Shown here piece by piece: positions 2,957 to 58,962 of a DNA stretch of 64,000 bases. The position numbers and the translations under genes were made by a program. The notes under the pieces were generated by a model. The model did not search any database and was not told the DNA's origin. It worked only from the letters and a program-made list of their open reading frames with translations. The number at the start of each line of letters is the position of its first letter. Position 1 is the stretch's first letter. Origin of the DNA: Tubulanus polymorphus (Eukaryota; Animalia; Nemertea); the NCBI RefSeq assembly GCF_964204645.1, contig NC_134031.1, forward strand, positions 10,542,088-10,606,087, given 5' to 3'.

Positions 2957-3353
2957 AGCTGCGTTCACACCAGTACGGTACTAAGCGCTTACACTGGAAA
3001 TTATTCAAGACCTATTCGCAGCTTATTCAGTTCTGTACTGAAATTTGCGGCTCATTTAGCGCGGAATGCAATTACGCGCCGAAAACCCGATTTCAGTACG
3101 GAATTGAGCTGGCTGCGTATTTTCTGTAGCGTGAACGTAGATTCAGTGCTTAGCTAGCCACGTATTTACATCTTCGTAGTACAGTACACTTATTACACTC
3201 CCCTCTATTGGCACACCGGGTGACTACTATACTGGGCTTACTAAGTGCTGAATTGACGACTCTAAGTGTGAACGTAACAGGCTGTATTTTGGTGAATTTG
3301 GCACCAGCAAAGTACGGTACTTCATAAGCGCCGTATCTAGTTTGAACGCGGCT
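2957..3353. mobile_element. PIF/Harbinger-like MITE
   Basis: TIR AGCTGCGTTCACAC / TTTGAACGCGGCT with TA-rich flanks. Confidence 0.6.
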
Positions 3354-3559
3354 TAACTATGGTGGATTCCCCAGGTGTACCCCTTCAAATGGTGCAGTTT
3401 GCATAGATAATGTGATGGAGGCTGGTTGTTTCGATGATAATCATAGCTCCTGATGATGGATACAGGTAAATGACATTTTATCAGTTCTCAGTTAAGATAC
3501 AGCGTTATGGGACTATATCCATTATATATATAGAGCTATAAATCGGATCCGTTTTCTCT

Positions 3560-6474
3560 ATCTGCGCAAAGTAGGTACGTGATCGCATAATGACTTTTTG
3601 CACGAGTTGTTACTTCGCAATAAACCTGCGCGAGCTGTGAACAGGTGCGCGATCGCGTATTGCATTGACGTACTGCGTACTGTGCGAGTCCTTCGCGCAG
3701 AATGAACCTGTGCGAGTTGTGATGAACAGATTTTACTTTATTCAATTAATTATGCAGCGAACTGTTAAAACATCAATATCAATAAAAGTAAGATTTTTCA
3801 CTATTTGAATTCGTCAAGAAGCGATATTTAGAAACGTTGTAAATTATCGTTAAAAGCTAAAGATTTGATGGTTTTGATTTTATATGCCTAATGACGATGA
3901 TTATATTGATGTAGTGTATTAAACTTGTAACTTGTAGTGTATCAAAATAGTGATACGGTACGTGAAAAGTAGCTTAATTACCTTTATCTGTTTATTAATC
4001 CTAATGTCATGAAATAATCCTGGTCAAGACGATGTCCTAACGTAAACTGAACAGTTCTGTTCTGGCCCAAGCTTATATTTTATTAATTCTATCGTGCACG
4101 CGAACTTAAAGCCTGGCGCATGACACGAGGCAATTTTTAGTCGTCGTGTTGCGACCAATTTTATCTCACGAAAATGCTGCACACCTCGGTTCAAAAATCT
4201 AAAAATATTAACCATTTTTTTATCACTTTCACTAATCCGCAAAGAATAACCGCAGATCCTGATTTCTTTGAAAATTTCTCAGCATACTTCGTTGCCATAT
4301 GCAACGCACGTCATAGGTCTGCAGTCATCTTTTTTGAGTCTGTATCCATGTCGTTAATCGTTGGTCGTTGGTTGTTTTCCGTTGTAAATGATGTTGTAAG
4401 TGATGTTAAGTGTTTGAAGAATCAAAGAATACTGTTTAATGTGCTGAGAAATTGCAGATTTTTATACGGTTCTTCTATCATTGTCTGCAGAGTTTTTAGA
4501 ACAACAAGTTTACACAACTCTTCTAGATATGATAACTATAAAGAAATTAGGGTTCCTGGTACGATTGGCAAACATTGTGCCGGTATTTTAAAATAAATGG
4601 GCGAATAGTATTACTAATTAGGCACATGCCACAATTTCTGCTTCGTTTAACATTTTGGCTACTTATTGTAAGAATTACTCGCATTTGAAACTAAAAGAAT
4701 ACCGGTATCGATTATAATGATTTCTTTGTTCGTTACCTCAGGTGCCAACACTAGACTGGTACTTAGTTTAAAAATGCATTTACATAGTAGTTTATACTAG
4801 ACTTATAATTAGTTAACGGCAGAAATTCATGATAAATGTGTATATACATAGTAATCAAGTTATATCCAGTCAGGCGTATTCCATCCGATGGCGCCAGGTG
4901 CCTTCAGAAAATAATGCCGGTCTGCTCTCCTTCTCAACCGCACCATAGAGATTACATACCATTTTTCCAACCCTCGAATTCATTTATTTTAACTTATCCA
5001 ATGATCACAATTTCCATAATGAACGGTATTTAATTTTGTGTAAATAGTAATATACAATATAAGCCGAAATATCATCTTTCTTATATATGTTCTTTATCAT
5101 AATTAGTACATTCAAATTTAAACACACCAACTTTTATTAATTAAGATAATAAAACTCTTTAATATTACTCCTTAATAATCAATTTATCAGACTAAGGGTC
5201 AGCGAGTGTTAAGTATATTTCATAATTGCTCATTTCCACGAATTCTTCTCATGACTACAGCGCCGTAATTACCTTCAAATGATTTAGATTGCTCGCCTGA
5301 TACAAGTATGAATGTTTCAGACAAACAACCATTAAGGCGGATAATGTATTATCTTGCATAACGAAACAATGCATGTATTCTCCCAGGACATACCAAGAAA
5401 CCTACGTATATAAATCGATTGATCTTTTTGAGAATACAATTCAGCTGCGGATCAATAACTTATTTATTGACCAAAAAGACAATTTTAATAATTAGATTAA
5501 TGCAAATGATAGATGTCAAATATTATCATATGTATATAATGCAGGTAGGAGAATGAATTTATGGCAAAATATAAGGGCTTCCTTAAATTACAAATAGAAA
5601 TGCTGACGAACTCATTTTCTTAGCTGTCAGGTCTAAAAATTACTTGTTTGTATAATTATCTAAATACTTTATACATAAGTGGTCAGCTATGTGTAAAATA
5701 AACTTGGGGAAAATGAGAAATTAGGTATAATTTTTTGTCCTATATCGCGCAATAAATGAATCAAAAAAATAAAATAAATGAATAAAAAAACTAGAAAATG
5801 CTTACTACAGACCACTAAAAGAGATACCTTTTTTCTCTTCAATCTGTGGGTGTTTAACATTAACGTTTAACGTGTTATTTCAATATCTTTTTATATACAT
5901 GTATAATGTTTAGTCAATGTGTCTACACGTGTATGACTTCATTAGTAATGAACAAAATTGTTATTTAAAACTCGTCTTTTCTCTCGGTCAGTATACGTGT
6001 ATTTAATGTTCTCTGCTAAACTGTTTGTAGATATCTCACATATGTACGCTAACAATTCCAAACACAAGCAATTTATACTCGTTTATTGTCTCTCACGTTA
6101 CATGTATTCAACTCTTGTCATAGGTAATTACCCCTAGTTTGTTTTGCTTTTTTAATCCTCTTAGATCGCTTCTGTCCTAATTACTTACATTTGTGGCGGA
6201 CTTCGTTTTTTTTTTGTCTGTCATTGTCGAGAAATCCTTTGAAAAAATTGTCACTTTTATCCCGCTCGCCCGAAAAATCATCGCACTAAGTAGAGGTGAA
6301 ATAAAATCCACGTGCCCGCAACAGAAGTCTTAGATAGTACGAAGTACCAGGTCTAATAACCTCGCGCAACTGATCATTACTATCAGCTGCGCGAAGTACC
6401 GGGTCTAATTACCTCGCGCAGTAACAACTCGCGCAACTGACCATTACGCGATTGCATAACTGGTTCGCGCAGAT
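3560..6474. mobile_element. Old non-autonomous TIR element
   Basis: Imperfect ~60-bp inverted ends (ATCTGCGC..ATCGC.TAATG..GAGTTGTTACT) with CGCGCA subterminal repeats; no TSD seen. Confidence 0.5.
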
Positions 6475-6501
6475 CGTCAGTCTCTGACCTTTACATACCT
6501 G

Positions 6502-6527
6502 ATATATATATATATATATATATATAT
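6502..6527. repeat. (AT)n microsatellite
   Basis: Visible run next to the exon 13 donor. Confidence 0.95.
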
Positions 6528-6544
6528 TTCTTTAGAGTACTTAC

Positions 6545-6666
6545 AGGGTATATGATGCTGCACAGTCGTTCAAAAATGAATACAGGAGATCTATAATCAT
6601 CTAAAGGATACTTCTGCAGGGTCTCGACACAAATGAACATGAATTCTCTAGTCTCACTTTCAGTAC
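6545..6666 (-). CDS. UBR4: UBR4 exon 13
   Basis: TESETREFMFICVETLQKYPLDDYRSPVFIFERLCSIIYP; 122 nt. Confidence 0.95.
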
Positions 6667-6734
6667 CTATAAAAAGTAACATGATCAATCAATACTTACA
6701 AGTATAACTTGATTAATACAATCAATACAATTGA

Positions 6735-7063
6735 GCGAGTAGTGTGGGTGAGTAGTTAGAGCTTTCGCCTGTGGGAAGCCAGGTTGTAGGTTCGAACCCC
6801 CGCACTTTATAGTAGTGTCCTTGGGGAAGACATTTATCATCATTGCCTAACGGGCACGCTTTACCCAGGAGTAAATAGGTACCTGGCCAGATAGCAGACT
6901 CCAGAGCTCCTATCAGCTGCTCAGATGTTTCTTCTGTGCAGGAATAGATGACTGATACATGAATAGAGTTATAGGCTGGGGTAATAATACCAAGTTTTGA
7001 GTGCATTTGAACAAACTCTAGTTTGGATACCTGCACTATATAAATGTCAATTATTATTATTAT
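6735..7063 (+). mobile_element. tRNA-derived SINE with central conserved domain and L2-like tail
   Basis: A-box-like TGGGTGAGTAGTT, B box GGTTCGAACCCC, GTGTCCTTGGGGAAGACA and CCCAGGAGTAAATAGGTACC blocks, tail CTATATAAAT..(TTA)n. Confidence 0.8.
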
Positions 7064-7954
7064 CATAAATAATACGAAAGGACCATAACATCCATATGTT
7101 AAAAATTGGCTAGTGGTAGATAAGGAAATGACTCTAAACCAACTACAACTGGGGATTCCCTGCATGGAACAGAAATTTAAGAAATATTTGGATTCAAAGA
7201 CTGTGTGAAAACAAAACATTTTCATTATGTCAATATGAACATTGATATGCTGTCACTTGTGACTATAGCATGTGTAGTCTGAGATTCTATTGATCACACA
7301 CGACAGCAAACTGCAGGCACATGTTTTTGCCTTGTCTAATGATATGACAAGACGCAACATGCCTGCAGTGAATGAATAAATGCACATATGCAGGGCCATA
7401 AAGCTTGGAAATAATTTCTGTCTGCCAAAATTTAGGACATTCAAAGACATTGTCTTCCAAATTTGAAGATCCAGCAACATTTCAAAGACTTTCAAATAAT
7501 CTAAAAACGGCTACAGACTCTACTGATCATATTCATTGTACATGTACAGCAAGGTTTGATGGTAGCGACCTAGTTTGTTATGCTTGTGCGTGAGAGATTG
7601 ATCAACAACCATAATATGAACCAGAATTACAAAGACAATAGCTAGGCGGCTATGGTACATTGTATATTGGATTGCAAATATGTGATTTTTGGTGTACAGA
7701 CATTATGGGACAGGCATTTTACATGACTCAAATTGGGCATACAGCATGTTCCAAGTAAAGAACCTGGTGTATCGAAACTTTGGAGTAACACTTTTTGTGA
7801 AAAAAAGTTTTTGCATTCAATTTGAATTGATAATGGGGCCAGGTAAATAATATCTGATTGGTCAAATCGAAAGGTCATATAATCATTATTTCTTATATCC
7901 AGCATATAGTTTCTTAGATCCTGCAACAGAAGGATAAAATGGTTTCAAACATAC

Positions 7955-8128
7955 CAGTGGTCATATCTTCAAGCAGGTCGAGAAGTTTGTCTTGAGTCTC
8001 ATCGATTAGCTTTGTTCTTTGAACAACAAGTTTTCTCAGTGACAAATATCCATTGAGGACTGGTCCAACCAATCTACTCTTATAGCGCTGTTTAATATTC
8101 TCTTGATCAACAAATGATGATAATAATT
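7955..8128 (-). CDS. UBR4: UBR4 exon 12
   Basis: LLSSFVDQENIKQRYKSRLVGPVLNGYLSLRKLVVQRTKLIDETQDKLLDLLEDMTT; 174 nt. Confidence 0.95.
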
Positions 8129-9094
8129 CTGAAATGGAGATTCCCTCATTTTAGATCTGAGATCATCATATCAGATAAATAGTAGTCACTGCCTAACGTA
8201 AAAGCATTATAGTCAACCTCGCATAAGTTGCTTGTCACTCGTCAAAGTCTCATAAGTTTTTAAGTCTTGGTTTATTTTGTTTTAAAAATATTTCTATAAG
8301 TTGTACATTGCAAGTCTTATAAACATGCAAGTGGCACAAAAATATGTGGTCCCATTTCTTTATTATTCTTCAACTTTAATCGTTGTCTACGTTGCAGCTC
8401 TGGAATGTATCATACCGATATTTTAAGGCATAAATACATAGTTTCTTTGACCACATCATGTGGTTACAGCTTCTATAAATACACTAATAACAATGAAAAT
8501 AATAGTAACAATAGCAATAAAAATAATAATAATAATAATAATAATATTAATAATATTTGATTGAGCCCAACAAGTACAACTTATGCAAGGTTGACTGTTT
8601 TGGAATCATGCTCTAGATCTAAAACCTGAATTAGCTCATTCTTACGAATCAATCTAAACTAAATCAAAGTACACTTTTTTATCAATATGTTTTGGATTTG
8701 TTTTCAACCTGATCTTTTCATAGCTGTTCTGTAGATGGCGTTGTATTTAGCTTGTGTATTTTCACAAGAAATACGCCCACACTTTTCTCTGAAAGTTTAT
8801 TCGTTTGTCTGTTCACCAGTCGGTAACGTCGTAATATGAATGTGCTCCATAAATATCTATGTAACTAAATGACTCTGCAAATAATCTACATTTTTTTATT
8901 TCATATTTACTACTCATTCATCAATATGAATTGATCGAAAATCTAGTGAACAAAATCTATTATACTTATAATTTTGTACTATTTTAGAAATGGCATATTA
9001 AAGATTAGAATGGTCAGTTTCAAACAATCGTTATCGAAGTAAATCACAATATGCCATCTAGGTTTTGCAGATATAATTGGCTAGAGAGCAATAA

Positions 9095-9161
9095 GTGTGT
9101 GTGTGTGTGTGGTGTGTGGGTGTGTGGGTGTGGGTGTGGGTGTGTGTGTGTGTGTGTGTGT
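9095..9161. repeat. (GT)n compound microsatellite
   Basis: Visible GT/GGT run about 35 nt from the exon 11 donor. Confidence 0.95.
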
Positions 9162-9194
9162 AGCTTAGGACTTGGAAGTTCTCAAGATGTTTAC

Positions 9195-9418
9195 CAGTCA
9201 AGGCGCGTAAGGCATATCCAAGTGATAGGTCAGAGTTGAGAGTGGTTTCTTCTAGAGTTGATAACTTATCAATTTCTTTCATGATGAGTCCACCAATTAT
9301 TGGTAAAATTCCTTTGATAGCTAGATAATGTTTCCAGTGAGCCGGGTTGATGAGTCGCTTGTAAAGGGCAAGAAATTCTGCAGTATTTTCACCATTACGA
9401 CATAGTTCATCCAAATAT
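9195..9418 (-). CDS. UBR4: UBR4 exon 11
   Basis: YLDELCRNGENTAEFLALYKRLI...HWKHYLA...LEETTLNSDLSLGYALRALT; 224 nt. Confidence 0.95.
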
Positions 9419-9690
9419 CTACAATGAACATATCAGTATTATAGTAATTAACCCTATCAGTGTAAACCCTGACTATAGTTGTGATGGGCTAATTGATCCC
9501 ACTTGTCAAGTATGACTTAAGTTGGGATGAACTCTGCACGCTTACTAAGATGGTGAAGCAGTCCTGCAGCTCGAGCCAGTAAACTACTATGGCTGTTGTG
9601 CATATCATACTTCGCTCAAATGCCATATACATAATTCATATGATGACTAAAGCACACAGAATACACTGCAAGACTGCCAAAAAATCTTAC

Positions 9691-9847
9691 CCAGTTAGGA
9701 GATCCAACACTTTTCTATGCCGATCATGTATTTGACAAATCGACTCAATGATATTACAAGCTGTCTGCCTTGCAGCTCTTGATGATGGTGTGAACAATGC
9801 TTGTCGCAACCATGTCCCATGAACTAATTGCAGTGGCAATGTTTTCT
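9691..9847 (-). CDS. UBR4: UBR4 exon 10
   Basis: KTLPLQLVHGTWLRQALFTPSSRAARQTACNIIE...KVLDLLT; 157 nt. Confidence 0.93.
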
Positions 9848-10114
9848 CTATAAAAAGATGCAAGATTTAATGCATGATAAGTGTTTGATGTCTTTCATCA
9901 TGTATTGATTATGGGAAAAAATTGTGTATCATATCTTGATTATATTTAAATGATTACAGTTATGATGAAAATAATGATAATAACAATGCTTAATCATGAA
10001 TTCAGTTGGCATCGAGAAGGAAAAAAAGTAACTCTCAGAACCATTCTATAAGGAATTCAATTGCGAGCATTACATGCATATCGGTATGACGAAACCCATA
10101 AGAATAGATTTTAC

Positions 10115-11617: not shown

Positions 11618-12676
11618 CTACACTAAAGGGTCCGATCGGAAAGAACGGACACCTTGAGCCATGACAACAGGACCAAGTGAAGCTAATGAGCCTAACTGGC
11701 CTGAAACATCCCGTAAATAAAATGACGTGAATGTCGATGGAGAATTCCAAAAGGCGGCCCGACAGACTTCCTCCAACGGAGCACCCGAAAAGGCTGCACA
11801 GGAAGTAGCCATAGACCTCACTTGATGAGAAACCACTCCCTCCGAGGAAAGATTCTCCTTCAATAAAATGTCCTTGATCAGTGAAGAGACCCATCGGGCC
11901 ACTGTGTCCCGCGAAATATCCCCCTTTAGGTGATCCAGCAGCGGAATAAATAACCGCTCCCGTGAACCCCTCCGTGAAGCAGAGCGATCTAAATAGAAAC
12001 ACAACGCCCGCACAGGACATAAAGTCCTGTCCGGGATGCCCGGTTCCACTCGATGTTTTAGGGCTTCAATTCGCCATTGACGCCCAACCGAGCCTGGTCG
12101 TTGGTTCTTTGCCAAAAATTCCAAAGCAGGCCGCAGCGAAACAAATTCTTTCGCTGGCCCAAAGACAATATGACCTTGTCGGACTGAAAGCGCATGAATC
12201 TCAGAGCGACGGGCTGAGCAAGCCAAGAACAGCAAAAATACAGTCTTTTTTGACAAATTTGCAAATGACGCTGCCGAAAGAGGTTCAAATGGAGCCTCCA
12301 TTAACTTCTTCAAAATTACAGACAGATCCCATGGTGGAACTGTCCTTGGTACCCGAGGCCGGGAAAGAGAAAACCCTGCAACCAGCTGGGATATCCGATG
12401 ATCCCCTGCTACATTTGGCCATCCAGAAGCACGCAATGTATGAGAAATCACGGAGCGGTAACCTTTAATAGTTATGACCTGCAAACCTTTCACTACAAAT
12501 AGGTGCAGTAAAAAATCTGCCAATTGAGCTACAGAGGGTGAGCATGGATCAATTACCCCTGCAGCACACCAATCCGCAAAATGACTCCATTTGGCATCGT
12601 GAATGGTACTTGTTGATGGCCGCTTAGATCCTGCGATAAAGGAGGCAGCCTGTTCTGAAAAGCCTGAAGCTGACAA
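11618..12676 (-). CDS. DIRS tyrosine recombinase core (open in copy B)
   Basis: SARRSE, LCPVRAL, HQVRS and STFTSFY motifs give the R...H-x-x-R...Y catalytic set. Confidence 0.9.
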   Translation of the reverse strand: MSASGFSEQAASFIAGSKRPSTSTIHDAKWSHFADWCAAGVIDPCSPSVAQLADFLLHLFVVKGLQVITIKGYRSVISHTLRASGWPNVAGDHRISQLVAGFSLSRPRVPRTVPPWDLSVILKKLMEAPFEPLSAASFANLSKKTVFLLFLACSARRSEIHALSVRQGHIVFGPAKEFVSLRPALEFLAKNQRPGSVGRQWRIEALKHRVEPGIPDRTLCPVRALCFYLDRSASRRGSRERLFIPLLDHLKGDISRDTVARWVSSLIKDILLKENLSSEGVVSHQVRSMATSCAAFSGAPLEEVCRAAFWNSPSTFTSFYLRDVSGQLGSLASLGPVVMAQGVRSFRSDPLV

Positions 12677-14570
12677 GGATCGCTGGACAATGGCCAGGCG
12701 AGCAGATTAAATCCCCGGCTGTTTGGATGATGCCGAAAGTTCCCCTGAGACAGAAGCGATGGGAAATTCGGAAGAGTCCTGGGGTTGTCGCACAGTAGGT
12801 TGAGAAGTGGTAGGAACCATTTCTGAGCCGGCCAACATGGTGCTACCAGAACTATGTTGCAACTGACTGATCTCTCTATTTGATCCAGTAAGCGCGGCAG
12901 GACTGGTGTGGGCGGGAACGCATACGCATGCATCCCCGACCAGTCCAGAGAGAAGGCATCGACCCCCACGCTTCCGCGTCTGGAAACGGGGACACAAACA
13001 GAGGACACCTCCGATTGAACCGGGTGGCAAACAGATCCAGCAGCGGATTGCCAAACATGCCCCGAACCCGATCGGCTACTTCTTGGTGGAGAACCCATTC
13101 TGTCGCAATAGCCTGACCTCGACGAGACAGAGCATCGGCCATCACGTTCCTTTTCCCTGCTAAATGTGCCACAGTCAGGGACACGCCCTTTGTCTGGCAC
13201 CAAAGAAGAATTTTGGCCGACAGACCTGTGAGGGTTTCTGAGTGAGTGCCCCCTTGGTTCTGAAGGTAAGCCCTCACTGTTGAATTGTCTGTGGCTAACC
13301 AAACGTGGTGGCCCTCCACTCTCCTGTGAAAGAACTTCAGGGCCTTCCACACGGCCAGCATTTCTAGGAAATTTATGTGGTTGGTGGCCTCGTAGCAAGA
13401 CCATCTCCCGGCTTTGACTCGGTTCTCCAGATGTGCCCCCCATCCTTGGTGACTGGCATCCGTAAATACACGAACTGTATACTGTAGACCCTGGGCTAGT
13501 GACACCCCGAGCCGAAGATTCGTAGTTGCCGCCCACCACTGAAGATCCGGACTTAGATCGGTTGGAGGTACGGGAATCAAGGCCTCCCAGTTGCCCTTCG
13601 ACTGAGACCAAAAGACCTTCCAATATTGTTGCAAGCGCCTGCTTCTGAGGCGGCCTAAGGGCACCACCAGACCCATGGAGCTGATGGAGCCTAGAAGCTG
13701 TGACCAGTAACGAGCTGTTCTCGGGGTTGTGGACACTCCCGCTACAGCTTCTTGAAGTTTGGCTACTCGAACCATAGACGGAAAGACTTTGCCCATTCGG
13801 AGATCGAAGTCCATGCCGAGATAAGTGAACTGTTGGGCCGGCGTCAACTGAGATTTTTCCCTGTTTACGCGGAACCCTAGCTGATGGACTAAGTCCAAGA
13901 CAGGTCATTGCCTCCCGACATTCCTGAGCCGAATTCGCGACTATTAACCAGTCGTCGAGGTAAACGAACAGTCGAACACCCCTTGACTGAAGTACCTTCT
14001 GAACTGACTTGACCAACTTGGTGAAAACCCACGGGGCCGTACTGAGGCCAAATGGAAGAGACCTGAATTGGAACTGGCGGCCTTTCCACTTTATCCTGAG
14101 AAATCGCCGAGATTTTGGGTGAATTGGAACCTGAAAGTAAGCATCTTTCAGGTCCAATGAAGCCGCCCATTGACCCGGACGGAGCCATTGAATCACGTCC
14201 TTGGGCTTGGTCATCCGGAACCTTGGAATGTCTAGGTGCCGATTGAGGGATGACAGATCTATCACTGTCCGTTGACCCCCTGTGGCCTTTGGTACCATGA
14301 ATATTCGAGAAAACCAGCCGGGAGAAGTTTCGTTGCAAACTGGTTCTATCGCTCCCTTCTCGGCCAATTCCTTGAGAGCTGGAGAGATTAAGGCCTCCTG
14401 ACCTGGTTTTGGCCGCATGTCGGGAGGTGACCTCATCAGGCGCGGTCGCCTTAGGAAACGGAGACGGTAGCCACGAGAGACGACCCGGGAGGGCCAACCG
14501 TCTCCAAAGAGGTCGGACCAGCGGGTTGCTGCCTGCTGCAGACAACCTCCCACTGGTCCCAAGAATTCAT
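12553..14570 (-). pseudogene. DIRS RT / RNase H / methyltransferase-like ORF, frameshifted in copy B
   Basis: Split across ORFs 12553-15900 and 12876-13898; -2 nt near 13901 and -1 nt near 12965 relative to copy D. Confidence 0.88.
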
Positions 14571-16769
14571 TTCGAGTTTTTCCGAAAGGAAGAGCCCCTT
14601 TTTGGTGCCTTCCCCTTGCCTCGATACGAACTGGAACTGTTACGACCGGACGAGGCTTGACACGATTGTTGAAGTTGCGCGCTAGTTCTACATCCGAAGC
14701 CGCCTGAGAAAGCGCTGAAGTTTGAGATGGTCCTGTTTGCGTCCGTGCCGAACCTTGCGCCGCCGGCGTCGGACCAGAACGCTTTTTCCACGGAGTTCGG
14801 GGGTTGGACTTGGCCTGAACCTCCCGAATCTTCCTCAGCTCTGCAGAAACCGGAGCGCACCAACCGGAGAAGAGACGTGAAGACGTCCCCAAAGGGGCTC
14901 TCAGCAAAGCATTGGACACCATATCCGGTTTGGAACTGGAGTCCATCACTGACTGACGGGAGGCTAACACCAGATTAGCCTGACCCCGAACCGACAACGG
15001 AATTACATGCGAAACAGACCGAGCCAAAGATTGGATAATCCGGTCCATTCCCTCCAGTTTTAGGGCAACTGACTCTGGGTCGGAGCCCGCATGAACGGCG
15101 GCGTGAGTCTCGCGAAGCTCACCCGTCAACACCTTAAGTGCCATATCTTGAAACGAACCAACCCTGGTAAGATTGTCCAGGATTGACGTCATGGCCACCA
15201 AACCGGACTTAGGTAAACGAATACCCGACTGTGCTGTAACGGTATCCGGGCTGATCAAAGTATAATCAGCATCCAGGCAGTTATGACTGTGATCCACAGC
15301 ACCTGGAGTTGCGTAATACGCCGAGCGAAATGCGCCTATAGGTGGATCGGTTGAACTAAAATATTTCCCAGATTTCATACCCCGTTCTGGAGGGGGAAAT
15401 GAAAATGTTCCAGGCCGACATTCACCCCATAAATGCGTATCCAATCGAGCCCATTCTCTCGAAACCGCTGACGATTCCCGTAAAACGTTAAGATCGGAGT
15501 CCGGAGGGCGATAAGCTTCCATTGACTCACTGACCAGAGGAGCTGCTGTGGGCTTAGCGCGAGTTGCCCCGTGCTTGACAAAGAACTCACTTATCATCGC
15601 TCTAAATAGCATGTCCCCCGCTGGTTCGGATAAAACTGAACGGGACGGAGATACATTGCGAGCCAGGGAAGCCCCCATCGTCTGGGGCAACCCACAATTG
15701 CTCGCGACAGGAACGACCCCAGAAGTAATTGCCGCTTCTGGGACCGGATCCTCATTGAAATCAGACCCTACCGCAGCATCCAGGAATTCAGAGTCAGAAT
15801 TCCGAAAAACTGAGTGGGCTGGCGAACTTCTAACCGGACAATCAGGAATAGGCTTACCTGTTGTAGAGGTTGCAGCGACTTGTTGCGACGAAGATAACAA
15901 GTTTAAAATTTTCTCCTCAAATACATGGAAATCCTTCTGAGTCAGGTATTTTCCAGTATCCAGACGATCATGCCGACTTCGGTGACGGTCCCTCGAACGG
16001 GATCGCGACCTACTAGAAGAATCGCTTTCATCGCTAACCGACGTCGACGAACGATGAGAAGACCGACGGCAAAACTTCCGACAATAACGATCGTAGTCCC
16101 TCTTGCGATCAAACCTTGATCTGCGAGAAGGAGATCTTGCTCGTTTATTAGGCTCACGGCGTCTGAAACTAGTGGGAGAGCGAGCTCTATCCCTGGAGCG
16201 ACGATCAGAATCAGACGATGAACGTACCGGATGTTTTGAACCGGACGACGTCTGGACCGGACCGGTGCCCGAACCGGACCGAACCGATGCCCGACCCGGT
16301 ACCGACCGAACCGGTGCGGCCGTTCGCGACTACCGCGGCGCGCGCTCGGTTCCGAATATGTAGTCTGAACCGGCCGAACCGGTGAACGACCGGAGACCGG
16401 TGAATGACCGGAGACCGGTGCCGGTGAACCAGCGTTCCTCCCCGGTGAACGGAGTTGGGAAGCCGATCGTACCTGAACGACCGGCGACCGCTCCGCTTTA
16501 CGATAAGAAACAGGATTAGAAACGTCGGTTGGCACATCGGCCGAAACCGACGAATCCCTGCTAACTCAACGACGATCTCTTAGTTTAAGAGCCTTATCGG
16601 CCCGAAGCCAAAGGTCCTCGGACCACACAACGCAAATCTTGCAAGGATTGCTCCTTGCACATATTTGACCGGATTTGCGCCTGCACGACGCACATGAACC
16701 GTGGTTGTCCCAGGCGCCAAACAAATGCCCGCATCCCTCCCCGCCACGATGCTGACCCTTAGGTGGCAT
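14567..16769 (-). pseudogene. DIRS gag-like ORF1 (Cys/His-rich N-terminus, RS-rich tract), frameshifted
   Basis: MPPKGQ...CGH...HGSCASC...C...CKIC zinc-finger-like start; RSRSRSR tract; spread over several ORFs. Confidence 0.8.
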
Positions 16770-41402: not shown

Positions 41403-42666
41403 ATGATCTATCTTTATTTGTGATATTGTATCATGGATGGTAGCCTAGTTTACCGTTTGATGTTTCGTGTCATTCTTTACTGCTGATGTCAATGCGGACA
41501 TATCACTACGCGATTGCTTAACCCCCTCTCATCCACCAGATAACTAACGAGATAAATGCGATAGAACAACTTCTTGGACCATTAAATGCTAATAATGAGA
41601 AGAGTCGGCGCTATTTTTTCGTACTACTATTTTCAATCCTACTATTTTACTAACTTCATAGACGTCAACCAATGCTAATAAAATGGAATTCGCTGAATTT
41701 GAATTTTTTGCTCAATAAAGTAAAATTTTATTGAATTTGACCATCTTTACAAAATGAATTTCATTGAATTTGGAATTCGTGCACATGGCTAACTTGCAAA
41801 TCAAGGTCATCTATCCGATTTGAGAAAAAGCAATTTTTCCCAATTGCCAAGTATGAATATTCAGTGCAAAATAAAAATACCTCTCAAAAACCAAACTGAC
41901 TAATGGGATCACAGGAATTGATGATTTGTATGAATATATGCTCAGTTGCACAGTCAAAGAGCCTTTACTCTGGAAACGATGTCATTTAAATTTGCTCCAT
42001 TTGTACAGTAATAGGCTCAGCCTGCAGCTGGCCTAATAAAATGATCTATCTTTATTTGTGATATTGTATCATGGATGGTAGCCTAGTTTACCGTTTGATG
42101 TTTTCGTGTCATTCTTTACTGCTGATGTCAATGCGGACATATCACTACGCGATTGCTTAACCCCCTCTCATCCACCAGATAACTAACGAGATAAATGCGA
42201 TAGAACAACTTCTTGGACCATTAAATCAGAAATCTGGTGAGGCTATGTTGTGGGGAATAATTGAAAAATTATTTTGAGTCATTTTTACCTGTATTTAATG
42301 TTTTATGTGAATGGAGCGACAATTTGAAGTTACTATGAAAATGAGAAGAGTCGGCGCTATTTTTTCGTACTACTATTTTCAATCCTACTATTTTACTAAC
42401 TTCATAGACGTCAACCAATGCTAATAAAATGGAATTCGCTGAATTTGAATTTTTTGCTCAATAAAGTATAATTTTATTGAATTTGACCATCTTTACAAAA
42501 TGAATTTCATTGAATTTGGAATTCGTGCACATGGCTAACTTGCATATCAAGGTCATCTATCCGATTTGAGAAAAAGCAATTTTTCCCGATTGCCAAGTAT
42601 GAATATTCAGTGCAAAATAAAAATACCTCTCAAAAACCAAACTGACTAATGGGATCACAGGAATTG
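41283..42666 (+). repeat. Near-identical tandem duplication (638 + 746 bp)
   Basis: 41283-41920 matches 41921-42666 except for a ~110-bp segment missing in the first unit. Confidence 0.9.
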
Positions 42667-42746
42667 ATCTTGAAATACAATTTCAAATCTTAAAATTAAA
42701 CCCGGAAATAAAACAGTCGTTGATACCGCGGAATCATGTGAACACC

Positions 42747-43085
42747 CATCCTCCCACGGCAGGGATTCGAACCTGATGGCACTGCTACACTCAGCAACGG
42801 CATGAAACCCCTGTCACACTAGACCGAATGGGCAGGTACATGCGCAGCTTTGCCGCACGAAAACTTGCGGCACCAATCAGAGTGCTCGTTGTATAATCGC
42901 TGAGGAAAATTTCAATGAAGAACTATAAATGGGAAAACCCGGGCTAAAATACAACGGGAAATCTGATTGGCTAATAATGATCATCTAAGCTGTGCGTGCA
43001 GCTGCGCGTTCGGTCTAATGTGGCAGGGTTTTGTACTGTGGCAATCTCGATGCCATCAGGTTCCAATCCCTGCCATGGGAGGATG
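42747..43085. mobile_element. 339-bp MITE with ~100-bp tRNA-like TIRs and 9-bp TSD (Mutator-like by TSD length)
   Basis: CATCCTCCCA...TGGGAGGATG; TSD GTGAACACC at 42738-46 and 43086-94; empty site seen in paralogous repeats (e.g. near 41095). Confidence 0.85.
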
Positions 43086-44086
43086 GTGAACACCTGAAGA
43101 CTTCTGCGGCTAAGCCTATCATAGAAGAGACAGTGCTTTCTGATTGGCTTTAAAACTGACAGTTTTGCTTTCAGATTTTTGTGAAAAACCTGCTGTAAAT
43201 ATTAATGAGGCCCTTTGTCTGAATTCTGTGCGCTTGAATGCACAATATGTTATACATTATTTTGTTTATTACATCGACGTGGCAAGATAATACATTCGAA
43301 TAGACGCGCACGTCAGCACAATAGCACCTCGTGTCTGCATTACATGTATAGTACGTTTGTATGCACGCGGTCACCATTCAGCTGTGTGTGTTGCTTCAGT
43401 AATGATAGTATGAACAGCACTCTCACACATCGGCGCACACGCATGTAAGCCTCTTACATCAGACAAACTAATCAGCAAAGTATAAGGCCTATGTCAGGCT
43501 GAAAAAAACTGCCTTCTAGAAAGCGATTACTGTTTATTAGCGACCAAACTTGTCGGACTGATCACTTCATCACTTTGACTAGTAACAACCAGAGCGCGGG
43601 TTCCCCCTAGTTACATCAAAACTGCCGACATTCCCAAAGCAGCCAATCATTACGGTTTCCCATAATTATGCCAAAAGCGCAGGCATTCCCAAAACAACCA
43701 ATCAGAGCGCAGGTTTTCACGCGTGCTTCCCGTGCCGTCAATATATGCCATAGTCTAGCCATAATCTTTCAAGGAATCCTGTCAATTTTTTGCATCAAAT
43801 GATGGAAATAATGGACAAAACAATAAACTTGATCTAACATTCAATAGTACAAATAAGTTGTATATTGCGAAAAGTGCCGACATTATGTTGTTTCAGAGAA
43901 AACTGAATGGTAAGAATTTGACTGACCTAGGAGACAACATGACGTCATTTGAACAGGATAACAAAGTGGTCATTCACTAGGTGAACCAACCACAAAAATC
44001 TTTGATAAATTTTCATGTGACAATAGCAATGACAATGTATTACAATGACAATGTATACAACTGGGAGGCTCTTAGAATAAACTTAC

Positions 44087-53142: not shown

Positions 53143-56100
53143 ATTACAATTTTTGGAACTAAAATTTGTATTTCCGAGTAGTACTTACCCTTTCCTATGG
53201 TTTTTGCCAATATTTTCTAAATTTGGATTGATCGCCAATGGTTTTTCTATACGACCCGGCCTTGCGGTATTGCATTTAGCCACCGGCGAAATCCGCCATC
53301 TTTTTACGTAATAGCAGACCAAAAAAAAAACAGCTATGCGGGGCAGGTGGGCGGGATTCCCACCATAGGAAAGGGTAAGTACTACTCGGAAATACAAATT
53401 TTAGTTCCAAAAATTGTAATATTTCCGTCGAGAACTGTACCCTTTCCTATGGTTTTTGCTAGACTAGCCTAGCACAAGGATGGTGGGAAAGGTAGATAGA
53501 AAAACCACCGCTCAAACGCAAGTTAAGAGGGAAAAAGAGAGCACTTATCCAAGCACGGAATGGAGCACTGTAGCACAGGGAAGACCGGTTGGCCACAGTG
53601 AGTCCGTCCAGCTCAGGGCCCCCCCCCCAGAATTTTGCGAAATTAATACTTGCAGATATGAGCCCAAACTATGTACAAGGATACACCCCCTGTGATCCTG
53701 ATAATGCAACATAAATATTCTACACTAAAGGGTCCGATCGGAAAGAACGGACACCTTGAGCCATGACAACAGGACCAAGTGAAGCTAATGAGCCTAACTG
53801 GCCTGAAACATCCCGTAAATAAAATGACGTGAATGTCGATGGAGAATTCCCAAAAGGCGGCCCGACAGACTTCCTCCAACGGAGCACCCGAAAAGGCTGC
53901 GCAGGAAGTAGCCATAGACCTCACTTGATGAGAAACCACTCCCTCCGAGGAAAGATTCTCCTTCAATAAAATGTCCTTGATCAGTGAAGAGATCCATTGG
54001 GCCACTGTGTCCCGTGAAATATCACCCTTTAGGTGATCCAGCAGCGTAATAAATAACCGCTCCCGTGAACCCCTCCGTGAAGCAGAGCGATCTAAATAGA
54101 AACACAACGCCCGCACAGGACATAAAGTCCTGTCCAGGATGCCCGGTTCCACTCGATGTTTTAGGGCTTCAATTCGCCATTGACGCCGAACCGAGCCTGG
54201 TCGTTGGTTCTTTGCCAAAAATTCCGAAGCAGGCCGCAGCGAAACAAATTCCTTCGCTGGCCCAAAGACAATATGACCTTGTCGGACTGAAAGCGCATGA
54301 ATCTCAGAGCGACGGGCCGAGCAAGCCAAGAACAGCAAAAATACAGTCTTTTTGACAAATTTTCAAATGACGCTGCCGAAAGAGGTTCAAATGGAGCCTC
54401 CATTAACTTCTTCAAAATTACAGACAGATCCCATGGTTGAACTGTCCTTGGTACCCGAGGCCGGGAAATAGAAAACCCTGCAACCAGCTCGGATATCCGA
54501 TGATCCCCTGCTACATTTGGCCATCCAGAAGCACGCAATGTATGAGAAATCGCGGAGCGGTAACCTTTTATAGTTATGACCTGCAAACCTTTTACTACAA
54601 ATAGGTGCAGTAAAAAATCTGCCAATTGAGCTACAGAGGGTGAGCATGGATCAATTTCCCCTGCAGCACACCAATCCGCAAAAATGACTCCATTTGGCAT
54701 CGTAAATGGTACTTGTTGATGGCCGCTTAGATCCTGCGATAAAGGAGGCAGCCTGTTCTGAAAAGCCTGAAGTTGACAAGGATCGCTGGACAATGGCCAG
54801 GCGAGCAGATTTAACCACTGGCTGTTTGGATGATGCCGAAAGTTCCCCTGAGACAGAAGCGATGGGAAATTCGGAAGAATCCTGGGGTTGTCGCACAGTA
54901 GGTTGAGAAGTGGTAGGAACCATTTCTGAGCCGGCCAACATGGTGCTACCAGAACTATGTTGCAATTGACTGATCTCTCTATTTGATCCAGTAAGCGGGG
55001 CAGGACTGGTGTGGGCGGGAACGCATACGCATGCATCCCCGACCAGTCCAGAGAGAAGGCATCGACCCCCCACGCTTCCGCGTCTGGAAACGGGGACACA
55101 AACAGAGGACACCTCCGATTGAACCGGGTGGCAAACAGATCCAGCAGCGGATTGCCAAACATGCCCCGAACCCGATCGGCTACTTCTTGGTGGAGAAACC
55201 ATTCTGTCGCAATAGCCTGACCTCGACGAGACAGAGCATCGGCCATCACGTTCCTTTTCCCTGCTAAATGTGCCACAGTCAGGGACACGCCCTTTGTCTG
55301 GCACCAAAGAAGAATTTTGGCCGACAGACCTGTGAGGGTTTCTGAGTGAGAGCCCCCTTGTGCTGAAGGTAAGCCCTCACTGTTGAATTGTCTGTGGCTA
55401 ACCAAACGTGGTGGCCCTCCACTCTCCTGTGAAAGAACTTCAGGGCCTTCCACACGGCCAGCATTTCTAGGAAATTTATGTGGTTGGTGGCCTCGTAGCG
55501 AGACCATCTCCCGGCTTTGACTCGGTTCTCCAGATGTGCCCCCCATCCTTGGTGACTGGCATCCGTAAATACACGAACTGTATACTGTAGACCCTGGGCT
55601 AGTGACACCCCGAGCCGAAGATTCGTAGTTGCCGCCCACCACTGAAGATCCGGACTTAGATCGGTTGGAGGTACGGGAATCAAGGCCTCCCAGTTGCCCT
55701 TTGACTGAGACCAAAAGACCTTCCAATATTGTTGCAAGCGCCTGCTTCTGAGGCGGCCTAAGGGCACCACCAGTCCCATGGAGCTGATGGAGCCTAGAAG
55801 CTGTGACCAGTAACGAGCTGTTCTCGGGGTTGTGGACACTCCCGCCACAGCTTCTTGAAGTTTGGCTACTCGAACCATAGACGGAAAGACTTTGCCGATT
55901 CGGAGATCGAAGTCCATGCCGAGATAAGTGAACTGTTGGGCCGGCGTCAACTGAGATTTTTCCCTGTTTACGCGGAACCCTAGCTGATGGACTAAGTCCA
56001 AGACTGAGGTCATTGCCTCCCGACATTCCTGAGCCGAATTCGCGACTATTAACCAGTCGTCGAGGTAAACGAACAGTCGAACACCCCTTGACTGAAGTAC

Positions 56101-58962
56101 CTTCTGAACTGACTTGACCAACTTGGTGAAAACCCATGGGGCCGTACTGAGGCCAAATGGAAGAGACCTGAATTGGAACTGGCGGCCTTCCCACTTTATC
56201 CTGAGAAATCGCCGAGATTCTGGGTGAATTGGAACCTGAAAGTAAGCATCTTTCAGGTCCAACGAAGCCGCCCATTGACCCGGACGGAGCCCTTGAATCA
56301 CGTCCTTGGGCTTGGTCATCCGGAACCTTGGAATGTCTAGGTGCCGATTGAGGGATGACAGATCTATCACTGTCCGTTGACCCCCTGTGGCCTTTGGTAC
56401 CATGAATATTCGAGAAAACCAGCCGGGAGAAGTTTCGTTGCAAACTGGTTCTATCGCTCCCTTCTCGGCCAATTCCTTGAGAGCCGGAGAGATTAAGGCC
56501 TCCTGACCAGGTTTTGGCCGCATGTTGGGAGGTGACCTCATCAGGCGCGGTCGCCTTAGGAAACGGAGACGGTAGCCACGAGAGACGACCTGGGAGGGCC
56601 AACCGTCTCCGAAAAGGTCAGACCAGTGGGTTGCTGCCTGCTGCAGACAACCTCCCACTGGTCCCAAGAATTCATTTCTAGTTTTTCCGAAAGGAAGAGC
56701 CCCTTTTTGGAGCCTTCCCCTTGACTGGACGAGGCTTGACACGATTGTTAAAGTTGCGCGCTAGTTCTCCAACCGGCATCCGAAGCGGCCTGAGAAAGCG
56801 TGGAAGTTTGAGATGGTCCTGTTTGCGTCCGTGCCGAACCTTGTGCCGCCGGCGTCGGACCAGAACGCTTTTTCCACGGAGTTCGGGGGTTGGACTTGGC
56901 CTGAACCTCCCGAATCTTCCTCAGCTCTGCGGAAACCGGAGCGCACCAACCGGAGAAGAGACGTGAAGACGTCCCCAAGGGGGCTCTCACCAAAGCATTG
57001 GACACCATATCCGGTAGACGAGTTTTGGAACTGGAGTCCATCACTGACTGACGGGAGGCTTACACAAGATTAGCCTGACCCCGAACCGACAACGGAATTA
57101 CATGCGAAACAGACCGAGCCAAAGATTGGATAATCCGGTCCATTCCCTCCAGTTTTAGGGCAACTGACTCTGGGTCGGAGCCCGCATGAACGGCGGCGTG
57201 AGTCTCGCGAAGCTCACCCGTCAACACCTTAAGTGCCATATCTTGAAACGAACCAACCCTGGTAAGATTGTCCAGGATTGACGTCATGGCCACCAAACCG
57301 GACTTAGGCAAACGAATACCCGACTGTGCTGTAACAGTATCCGGGCTGATCAAAGTATAATCAGCATCCAGGCAGTTATGACTGTGATCCACAGCACCTG
57401 GAGTTGCGTAGTACGCCGAGCAAAATGCGCCTATAGGTGGATCGGTTGAACTAAAATATTTCCCAGATTTCATACCCCGTTCTGGCGGGGGTAATGAAAA
57501 CTGAACGGGACAGAGATACATTGCGAGCCAGGGAAGCCCCCATCGTCTGGGGCAACCCACAATTGCTCGCGACAGGAACGACCCCAGAAGGAATTGCCGC
57601 TTCTGGGACCGGATCCTCATTGAAATCAGACCCTACCGCAGCATCCAGGAATTCAGAGTCAGAATTCCGAAGAACTGAGTGGGCTGGCGAACTTCTAACC
57701 GGACAATCAGGAATAGGCTTACCTGTTGTAGAGGTTGCAGCGACTTGTTGCGACGAAGATAACAAGTTTAAAATTTTCTCCTCAAATACATGGAAATCCT
57801 TCTGAGTCAGGTATTTTCCAGTATCCCGAAGATCGTGCCGACTTTGGTGACGGTCCCTCGAACGGGATCGCGACCTACTAGAAGAATCGCTTTCATCGCT
57901 AACCGACGTCGACGAACGATGAGAAGACCGACGGCGAAACTTCCGACAATAACGATCGTAGTCCCTCTCGCGATCAAACCTTGATCTGCGAGAAGGAGAT
58001 CTTGCTCGTTTATTACGCTCACAGCGTCTAAATCTAGTGGGAGAGCGAGCTCTATCCCCGGAGCGACGATCAGAATCAGACGATGAACGTACCGGATGTT
58101 TTGAACCGGACGACGTCTGGACAGGACCGGTACCCGAACCGGACCGATACCGACCGAACCGGTGCGGGCCGTTCGTGACTACTGCGGCGCGCACTCGGTT
58201 CCGAACATGTAGTCTGAACCGGCCGAACCGGTGAAGGACCAGAGACCGGTGAATGACCGGAGACTGGTGCCGGTGAACCAGCGTTCCTCCCCGGTGAACG
58301 GAGTTGGGAAGCCGATCGTACCTGAACGACCGGCGACCGCTCCGCTTTACGATACGAAACAGGATTAGAAACATCGGTAGGCACGTCGGCCGAAACCGAC
58401 GAATCCCTGCTAACTCGACGACGATCTCTTAGTTTAAGAGCCTTATCGGCCCGAAGCCAAAGGTCCTCGGACCACACGTCGCAAATCTTGCAAGGATTGC
58501 TCCTTGCACATATTTGACCGGATTTACGCCTGCACGACGCACATGAATCGTGGTTGTCCCAGGCGCCAAACAAATGCCCGCATCCCTCCCCGCCACGATG
58601 CTGACCCTTAGGAGGGGGTGGCATAATTATCCTGTTACAAATCAAAACAATTCAATTCAATCAAATTATATTTGTACATAAAATTCTTACGGAAAAATAG
58701 AAACTAGGGATAACCTCCAAACCGAACGGACTCACCGTTATGAGAGTGAAAACTCCCTAATATCCTAATTCCCAGATTTTTACGGCGAAAAAATCCAACG
58801 CGTTCTACTGCGAGAACGCCAAGAAAAATGATGGTGGATTTCGCCGGTGGCTAAATGCAATACCGCAGGGCCGGGTCGTATAGAAAAACCATTGGCGATC
58901 AATCCAAATTTAGAAAATATTGGCAAAAACCATAGGAAAGGGTACAGTACTCGACGGAAATA
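53143..58962 (-). mobile_element. DIRS1-like copy D, near full length, nested in a Penelope-like element
   Basis: ITRs and ICR present; RT-RH ORF 55279-56742; frameshifts in RH/MT and YR; gag deletion near 57494. Confidence 0.96.

Follow-up and report, generated by a model that had tools for sequence, protein, structure and literature searches.

The window, a stretch of 64,000 nucleotides from the genome of the nemertean Tubulanus polymorphus, carries at positions 42747-43085 a 339-bp element that lies between two exact copies of the 9-bp sequence GTGAACACC, as found both by reading the sequence and with a repeat finder (Table 1). The element interrupts an interspersed repeat for which a genome search gave 765 first-look candidates. 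In four paralogues of this host repeat (L033-L036), a single GTGAACACC is present in the uninterrupted context ...GGAATCAC GTGAACACC TGATGAC.... The duplication and the uninterrupted paralogues therefore confirm an insertion, with exact boundaries and a 9-bp duplication. This is what the initial annotation had reported, and every sequence string quoted in it was found in the window. A 229-bp stretch of the host repeat (42440-42668) is duplicated 746 bp upstream, at 41694-41922, with 99% identity. Elsewhere in the window, long reverse-transcriptase frames were detected on the minus strand at 12553-15900 (1,115 aa, RVT_1) and at 55279-56742 (487 aa, RVT_1 and an RNase H-like domain). These frames are located in the G+C-rich blocks, which indicates that retrotransposons fill much of the window.

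The two arms of the element pair over 36 nt at 94% (42746-81 with 43051-86) and over 46 nt at 80% (42805-50 with 42987-43032), and those of the family consensus align over 103 and 99 nt. Within each arm, the terminal motif has an inner inverted copy; in the consensus, positions 13-28 match the reverse complement of positions 53-68. The core between the arms contains the inverted pair CCAATCAGA / TCTGATTGG, already described for the spacer but longer than had been stated, at 22 nt with 86% pairing by the repeat finder (42873-94 with 42949-70). The opposed CCAATCAGA motifs, which are of the NF-Y-type CCAAT kind, occupy 42873-42881 and 42962-42970, and a TATAAA is found at 42924-42929. Folded as single-stranded DNA, the entire element forms one long 339-nt hairpin (-97.5 kcal/mol, z = -12.4 versus shuffles). 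This copy differs from the family consensus by 7.4%.

Table 1. Features of the element and of its host repeat, in window coordinates.
Feature	Positions	Strand	Basis or remark
Host interspersed repeat, left part	42440..42737, resumes 43095-43214	.	paralogues colinear across site
Left target-site duplication GTGAACACC	42738..42746	.	sequence read and repeat finder
Left terminal inverted repeat, ~104 bp, terminus CATCCTCCCACGG...	42747..42850	-	repeat finder; consensus alignment
B-box-like 11-mer, perfect (GGTTCGAATCC outward), within least variable terminal block GGCAGGGATTCGAACCTGATGGCA	42763..42773	-	
Left-arm inner inverted copy of terminal motif, pairs with 42760-42768	42805..42813	-	left-arm fold
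D-loop/A-box-like 9-mer (GGTCTAGTG outward), left arm	42817..42825	-	sequence read
Non-coding core between arms	42851..42986	.	two inverted CCAAT-type motifs and TATAAA
Right terminal inverted repeat, ~99 bp, terminus ...CCATGGGAGGATG	42987..43085	+	repeat finder; consensus alignment
Right-arm D-loop-like motif, degenerate (GGTCTAATG; consensus GGTCTAGTG)	43012..43020	+	
Right-arm inner inverted copy of terminal motif, pairs with 43060-43075	43021..43036	+	16 nt at 81%; fold
Right-arm B-box-like 11-mer, broken here (GGTTCCAATCC; consensus GGTTCGAATCC)	43059..43069	+	
Right target-site duplication GTGAACACC	43086..43094	.	sequence read and repeat finder

Copies in the genome and class of the element

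Copies were sought in the source assembly of the window (268 Mb, 77 contigs). With the element as query, 1,761 first-look candidates were obtained, and each of the 40 that were scored was full-length, with 86-90% identity. The terminal 35-mer, with up to two mismatches, occurs 1,299 times in the genome (658 forward and 641 reverse; 0 for the reversed control), and the family comprises at least 650 copies, roughly a thousand in all. When one mismatch at most was allowed, an inner-arm 18-mer was retrieved 1,021 times; the exact 18-mer of the tip, which holds the B-box-like motif, was retrieved 942 times. Since the count of the inner-arm motif is similar to that of the termini, the arms occur whole and paired rather than as solitary heads.

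Thirty copies were retrieved together with their flanks. In 10 of them, the 9-bp duplications were exact and lay precisely at the boundary, about eight more had 9-mer duplications with one or two mismatches, and four had exact 8-mer duplications; about one-fifth of the clear duplications are 8 bp. The duplicated sequences all differ from one another, and the insertion sites are unrelated. The 30 copies diverge from the consensus by 5.7% on average, with CpG sites twice as variable as the others. Certain pairs of copies are 98% identical, which means that part of the family moved fairly recently. Members are 339-340 bp long, and the consensus contains no open reading frame, its longest stop-free stretch being 69 aa.

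A genome-wide pattern search also retrieved a second, larger subfamily, which differs just inside the left arm (...GCGCAGCTT followed by TCCGAACGAAA). A variant present in two copies led to an old 286-bp relative, L068, with 69% identity, which has retained both CCAAT motifs along with the terminal 27 bp. The right arm of L068 aligns along its length, while the left arm aligns without its middle, including the D-loop-like part, as a result of an internal deletion. A deletion variant of the element, with inner motifs 157-203 bp apart, is found six times at 6-17-kb spacing near the end of contig C1 (G000:C1:31812045-31870797), as though the element had been copied along with its surroundings in a tandem segmental duplication. 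In another locus, L005, positions 2722-2805 form a perfect 84-nt palindromic hairpin with matches to several plant microRNA families of at most 49.9 bits, far under the cut-offs; this hairpin probably represents a further small element with inverted repeats.

The inverted ends, the duplications, the empty site, the copy number and the lack of coding capacity together identify a non-autonomous DNA transposon of the miniature inverted-repeat (MITE) type. The inverted repeats reach about 100 nt in the consensus, the duplications surround the whole unit at an essentially fixed length (9 bp here, 8-9 bp elsewhere), and the copies are small, numerous and homogeneous in length. The best full explanation of 42747-43085, and one that we hold with high confidence, is thus one aged copy of a MITE of about 340 bp that moved in trans. 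The initial annotation had proposed that a non-autonomous element with long inverted ends had moved by cut and paste and left 9-bp duplications, and had suggested a genome search for copies with paired arms and distinct duplications; such copies exist, and they form a true multi-copy family. That the unit might instead be a head-to-head pair of SINE heads brought together by chance, or some other retro-element fragment, has some background in the abundance of tRNA-related sequence in this genome (6,067 perfect B-boxes and 23,781 rough tRNA-model candidates). However, both arms are present at fixed spacing in all 40 scored matches. In addition, the duplications flank the entire unit around a precise empty site, the counts of inner and terminal arm motifs match on both strands, and nearly all arms run on into the family's own core. 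These results together refute a chance pair or other retro-element origin. Nor does the family conform to a tRNA-derived SINE, with a 3' tail, variable duplications, solitary heads and no inverted ends: such SINEs have a tail and duplications of variable length, whereas this family has inverted ends, fixed-length duplications and movement as DNA.

A conservation profile was computed with sliding 11-nt windows (330 in total) over 30 copies which, having been chosen for their likeness to the window copy, make it suggestive only. Variation was lowest in the windows over the left CCAAT motif, over a TATAAT stretch and, in either arm, over the B-box block; the windows at consensus positions 14-21 were among the 25 least variable of the 330. 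The D-loop-like motif ranked 104 and 291 of 330, the latter for the left-arm copy listed in Table 1, and is not conserved above background.

Without coding capacity of its own, the element would be mobilised in trans by a DDE-type transposase, whose staggered cut of 9 bp, sometimes 8 bp, would generate the duplication on either side. Its most likely recognition sequence is the conserved block at the termini, CATCCTCCCNCGGCAGGGATTCGAACCTGATGGCA. A portion of this block, GGCAGGGATTCGAACC, appears again in inverted orientation about 40 bp further in on each arm, which gives four copies per element and one hairpin per arm, and the B-box-like GGTTCGAATCC is part of this repeated terminal motif. The conserved block is most simply seen as a putative transposase-binding site, because GGCAGGGATTCGAACC recurs inverted, in a non-B-box form, in each arm.

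The CCAAT and TATA motifs of the core may have remained from a promoter or may serve as binding sites. In the former case, the core would be what is left of a Pol II-type promoter derived from the transposase gene of the parent element, or would carry such a promoter from place to place. The low variability of the CCAAT-type and TATAAT windows, the survival of both CCAAT motifs in the 69%-identical L068 and the position of the left CCAAT 49 bp before TATAAA in the consensus are consistent with this proposal. Nevertheless, these are all motif matches, for which subterminal transposase-binding sites are an equally possible explanation, and we consider a promoter role unlikely. It adds to the identification as a MITE and does not compete with it.

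Likeness of the arms to tRNA genes

The initial annotation described the arms as two outward-facing tRNA-like genes. By every standard test, they are not tRNA genes. ARAGORN detected no tRNA in the window. A permissive Rfam search at E<=10 gave no RF00005 match in 42600-43250, which includes the window copy, in 20 other copies with their flanks or in a well-preserved copy searched alone (381 bases). In this last search, a microRNA hairpin family gave a better match to an arm than any tRNA model did, although this match was itself at noise level. The gathering score of RF00005 is 29 bits, and real tRNAs of this genome score 66-72 bits. We also built a covariance model from 11 aligned tRNAs of the same genome (Ala, Thr, Arg, Trp, Gln and Cys) and, with filters off, used it to score 29 loci at every position. 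The arm ends reached 7.5-10.4 bits (E 1-9), while unrelated flanks reached 15 and 11.8 bits. Of 23 weak matches to this model, 13 were in arm ends; their score came almost wholly from the T-loop, and the 13 are copies of one sequence. Comparison with a tRNA model, which the initial annotation had itself put forward as a test of its proposal, was therefore no better than noise and argues against it. The two flank sequences, in L014 (3087-3170, minus strand, 11.8 bits) and L007 (720-768, plus strand, 15 bits), score above every arm of the family and are probably eroded tRNA-derived repeats.

Each arm alone folds as one irregular hairpin, in which GGCAGGG(G/T)TTCGT pairs with GGTTCGAATCCCTGCC, while a real tRNA folded alongside gave a cloverleaf. 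The family consensus contains neither complementary acceptor halves nor an anticodon stem. A likeness of the ends to tRNA-Glu had also been noted, but the halves on which it depends ('CCCATTCGG...GTGGGA' and 'GCCCATTCGG...GTGGGA') are due to three substitutions private to the window copy, and the consensus at these positions is GCGCACCCGG...CCG(A/G)GGGA.

Of the A-box and B-box patterns that had been reported, the B-box is real and conserved. In either arm of the consensus, GGTTCGAATCC agrees exactly with the Pol III B-box and is enclosed by 4 bp of T-stem-like pairing (CAGG/CCTG), and it is intact in 23 left and 24 right arms of the 30 copies. A chance match of this kind, in both arms and with such pairing, is not expected for one given family. 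Together with the 13 weak model matches in arm ends, it makes a remote descent of the terminal 30 bp from a tRNA conceivable. The A-box/D-loop-like match is partial, and its conservation does not rise above background. GGTCTAGTG lies 47 nt upstream of the B-box and, compared by eye with the A-box consensus (taken as TRGCNNAGTGG), matches six of the nine specified positions. In the left arm, TGGCTGAGTGT matches eight of the nine, just 25 nt upstream, and is aligned as the D-arm by our tRNA model.

In the genome, 6,067 perfect GGTTCGAATCC sites were found, against 23 for the reversed control, and 942 of them (15.5%) lie within the exact terminal 18-mer of the family. The 942 sites are the factual basis of the proposal of mobile TFIIIC sites made in the initial annotation. 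With about 23,800 rough tRNA-model candidates as well, this genome is very heavily loaded with tRNA genes or with repeats derived from them. One example is a tandem series of B-boxes, one every 76 bp, in the opening part of contig C1 (e.g. C1:95931-96245).

The arms resemble tRNA genes and SINE heads in their perfect B-box 11-mer, in the short pairing of T-stem type and in a partial A-box/D-loop-like motif, whose distance from the B-box is like that in tRNAs. They differ in that the tRNA-like 3' end is at the tip of the element and faces outward and, from tRNA genes, in the lack of a cloverleaf and in a score at noise level. One could propose, in line with the initial annotation, that the arms are an eroded tRNA gene or SINE head that would still work as a Pol III/TFIIIC element, so that one or two B-box sites would be delivered by each copy, perhaps with outward Pol III transcription or insulator activity. 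The exact B-box with its T-stem-like pairing, the low variability of the B-box block, the D-loop-like motif upstream, the better A-box-like motif that our model took as a D-arm and the share of the genome's perfect B-boxes held by the terminal 18-mer are all in keeping with such an ancestry, and Dada transposons are a precedent for ends that mimic small-RNA genes (PMC3706591). However, RF00005 is silent on every copy searched, our own model ranks the arms below unrelated flanks, the arms fold as single hairpins whose consensus has no acceptor or anticodon stem, and the acceptor-like halves belong to one copy. The D-loop-like motif is not conserved and is gone from the left arm of L068, and both arms contain an inverted, non-B-box twin of the 'B-box', a pattern that a protein-binding site present in several copies would produce. 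Judged from these sequence features, a tRNA-derived Pol III/TFIIIC role of the arms is improbable.

Dada transposons insert at specific sites of tRNA or snRNA genes, with 6-7-bp duplications and no terminal inverted repeats (PMC3706591). Like the present family, they are DNA transposons with subterminal sequence resembling part of a small-RNA gene (PMC3706591). In contrast, the family described here consists of MITEs with 100-bp inverted ends and 8-9-bp duplications, and the 30 copies examined lie at unrelated sites, which rules out membership of Dada.

Source of the transposase

Mutator elements (MULEs) typically have duplications of about 9 bp and long terminal inverted repeats, and Merlin-type transposases make 8-9-bp duplications. 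The source superfamily of the family may well be Mutator-like; a Merlin-like source appears rather doubtful, and other superfamilies are also conceivable. A Mutator-like source is plausible because of the length of the duplications, mostly 9 bp with some of 8, and the long ends, with arms of about 100 bp. The initial annotation had suggested Mutator from the 9-bp duplication and the long inverted repeats, and to this extent the suggestion stands; a transposase-bearing partner was not found among the loci and patterns examined. Like Mutator-derived MITEs, the family is non-coding and present in high copy number, with ends of about 100 bp and mainly 9-bp duplications that have no evident target consensus. 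It differs from them in that about one-fifth of the clear duplications are 8 bp and in the internal inverted copy of the terminal motif in its arms. Merlin (IS1016/IS1595-like) MITEs share the 8-9-bp duplications.

Transposase genes of both types are present in the genome, with 56 MULE matches and 43 matches to Merlin (IS1595-type DDE) transposases. The one MULE locus inspected, L067, contains a 6.9-kb Mutator-like element (3023-9922; G000:C5:13154022-13160921) whose two inverted ends of 57 bp are 100% identical and which contains a MULE frame of 471 aa. Two other places in the genome match its MULE with equal score and an equal 471-aa frame, and for this reason the element looks recently active. 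Its 57-bp ends are, however, unrelated to those of the family, whose termini are absent from the locus. They were likewise missing from the three Merlin-type loci inspected (L069-L071).

Longer copies with the same termini and a transposase gene, which the initial annotation had proposed to look for, were not found either. Two genome-wide patterns, consisting of the terminal block or the inner end of the arm followed by sequence foreign to the MITE, yielded no recurrent longer element; they retrieved indel variants, the larger subfamily mentioned above and a few singletons. Three of the singletons (L072-L074) were negative as partners: one is a composite with 1.6 kb of filler that contains no ORF, one is a copy with a deletion, and one is a solo arm.

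Place of the family among known repeats

No report of a MITE with ends resembling tRNAs or with TFIIIC sites came up in the literature search, nor did any work on MITEs of nemerteans. The family is probably uncatalogued. In itself, it is one more MITE family in a little-studied phylum and a matter of routine repeat annotation, of practical value when repeats of this genome are masked or insertions dated. What sets the family apart is a single trait, the exact Pol III B-box in the most conserved part of both ends, and the family supplies about 15% of the genome's perfect B-boxes.

Extra-TFIIIC sites are dispersed B-box consensus sites carried by repeat families, and SINEs are known to carry insulators. 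The present family resembles these systems in having dispersed B-box sites on a repeat family and differs from them in that the carrier is a DNA transposon, whose B-boxes are candidate binding or insulator sites. To our knowledge, the role of carrier of TFIIIC sites has so far been described for SINEs and not for MITEs. It is conceivable, although very unlikely as a whole, that about a thousand perfect B-boxes (at least 942, about one-sixth of all) were spread by this DNA transposon as potential TFIIIC sites, its terminal block perhaps deriving from an eroded tRNA T-arm and acceptor 3' half. If TFIIIC does bind, the family would be a cut-and-paste carrier of extra-TFIIIC or insulator sites, or of outward Pol III starts. 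Use of the B-boxes by TFIIIC or Pol III would then represent a new route by which such sites are spread.
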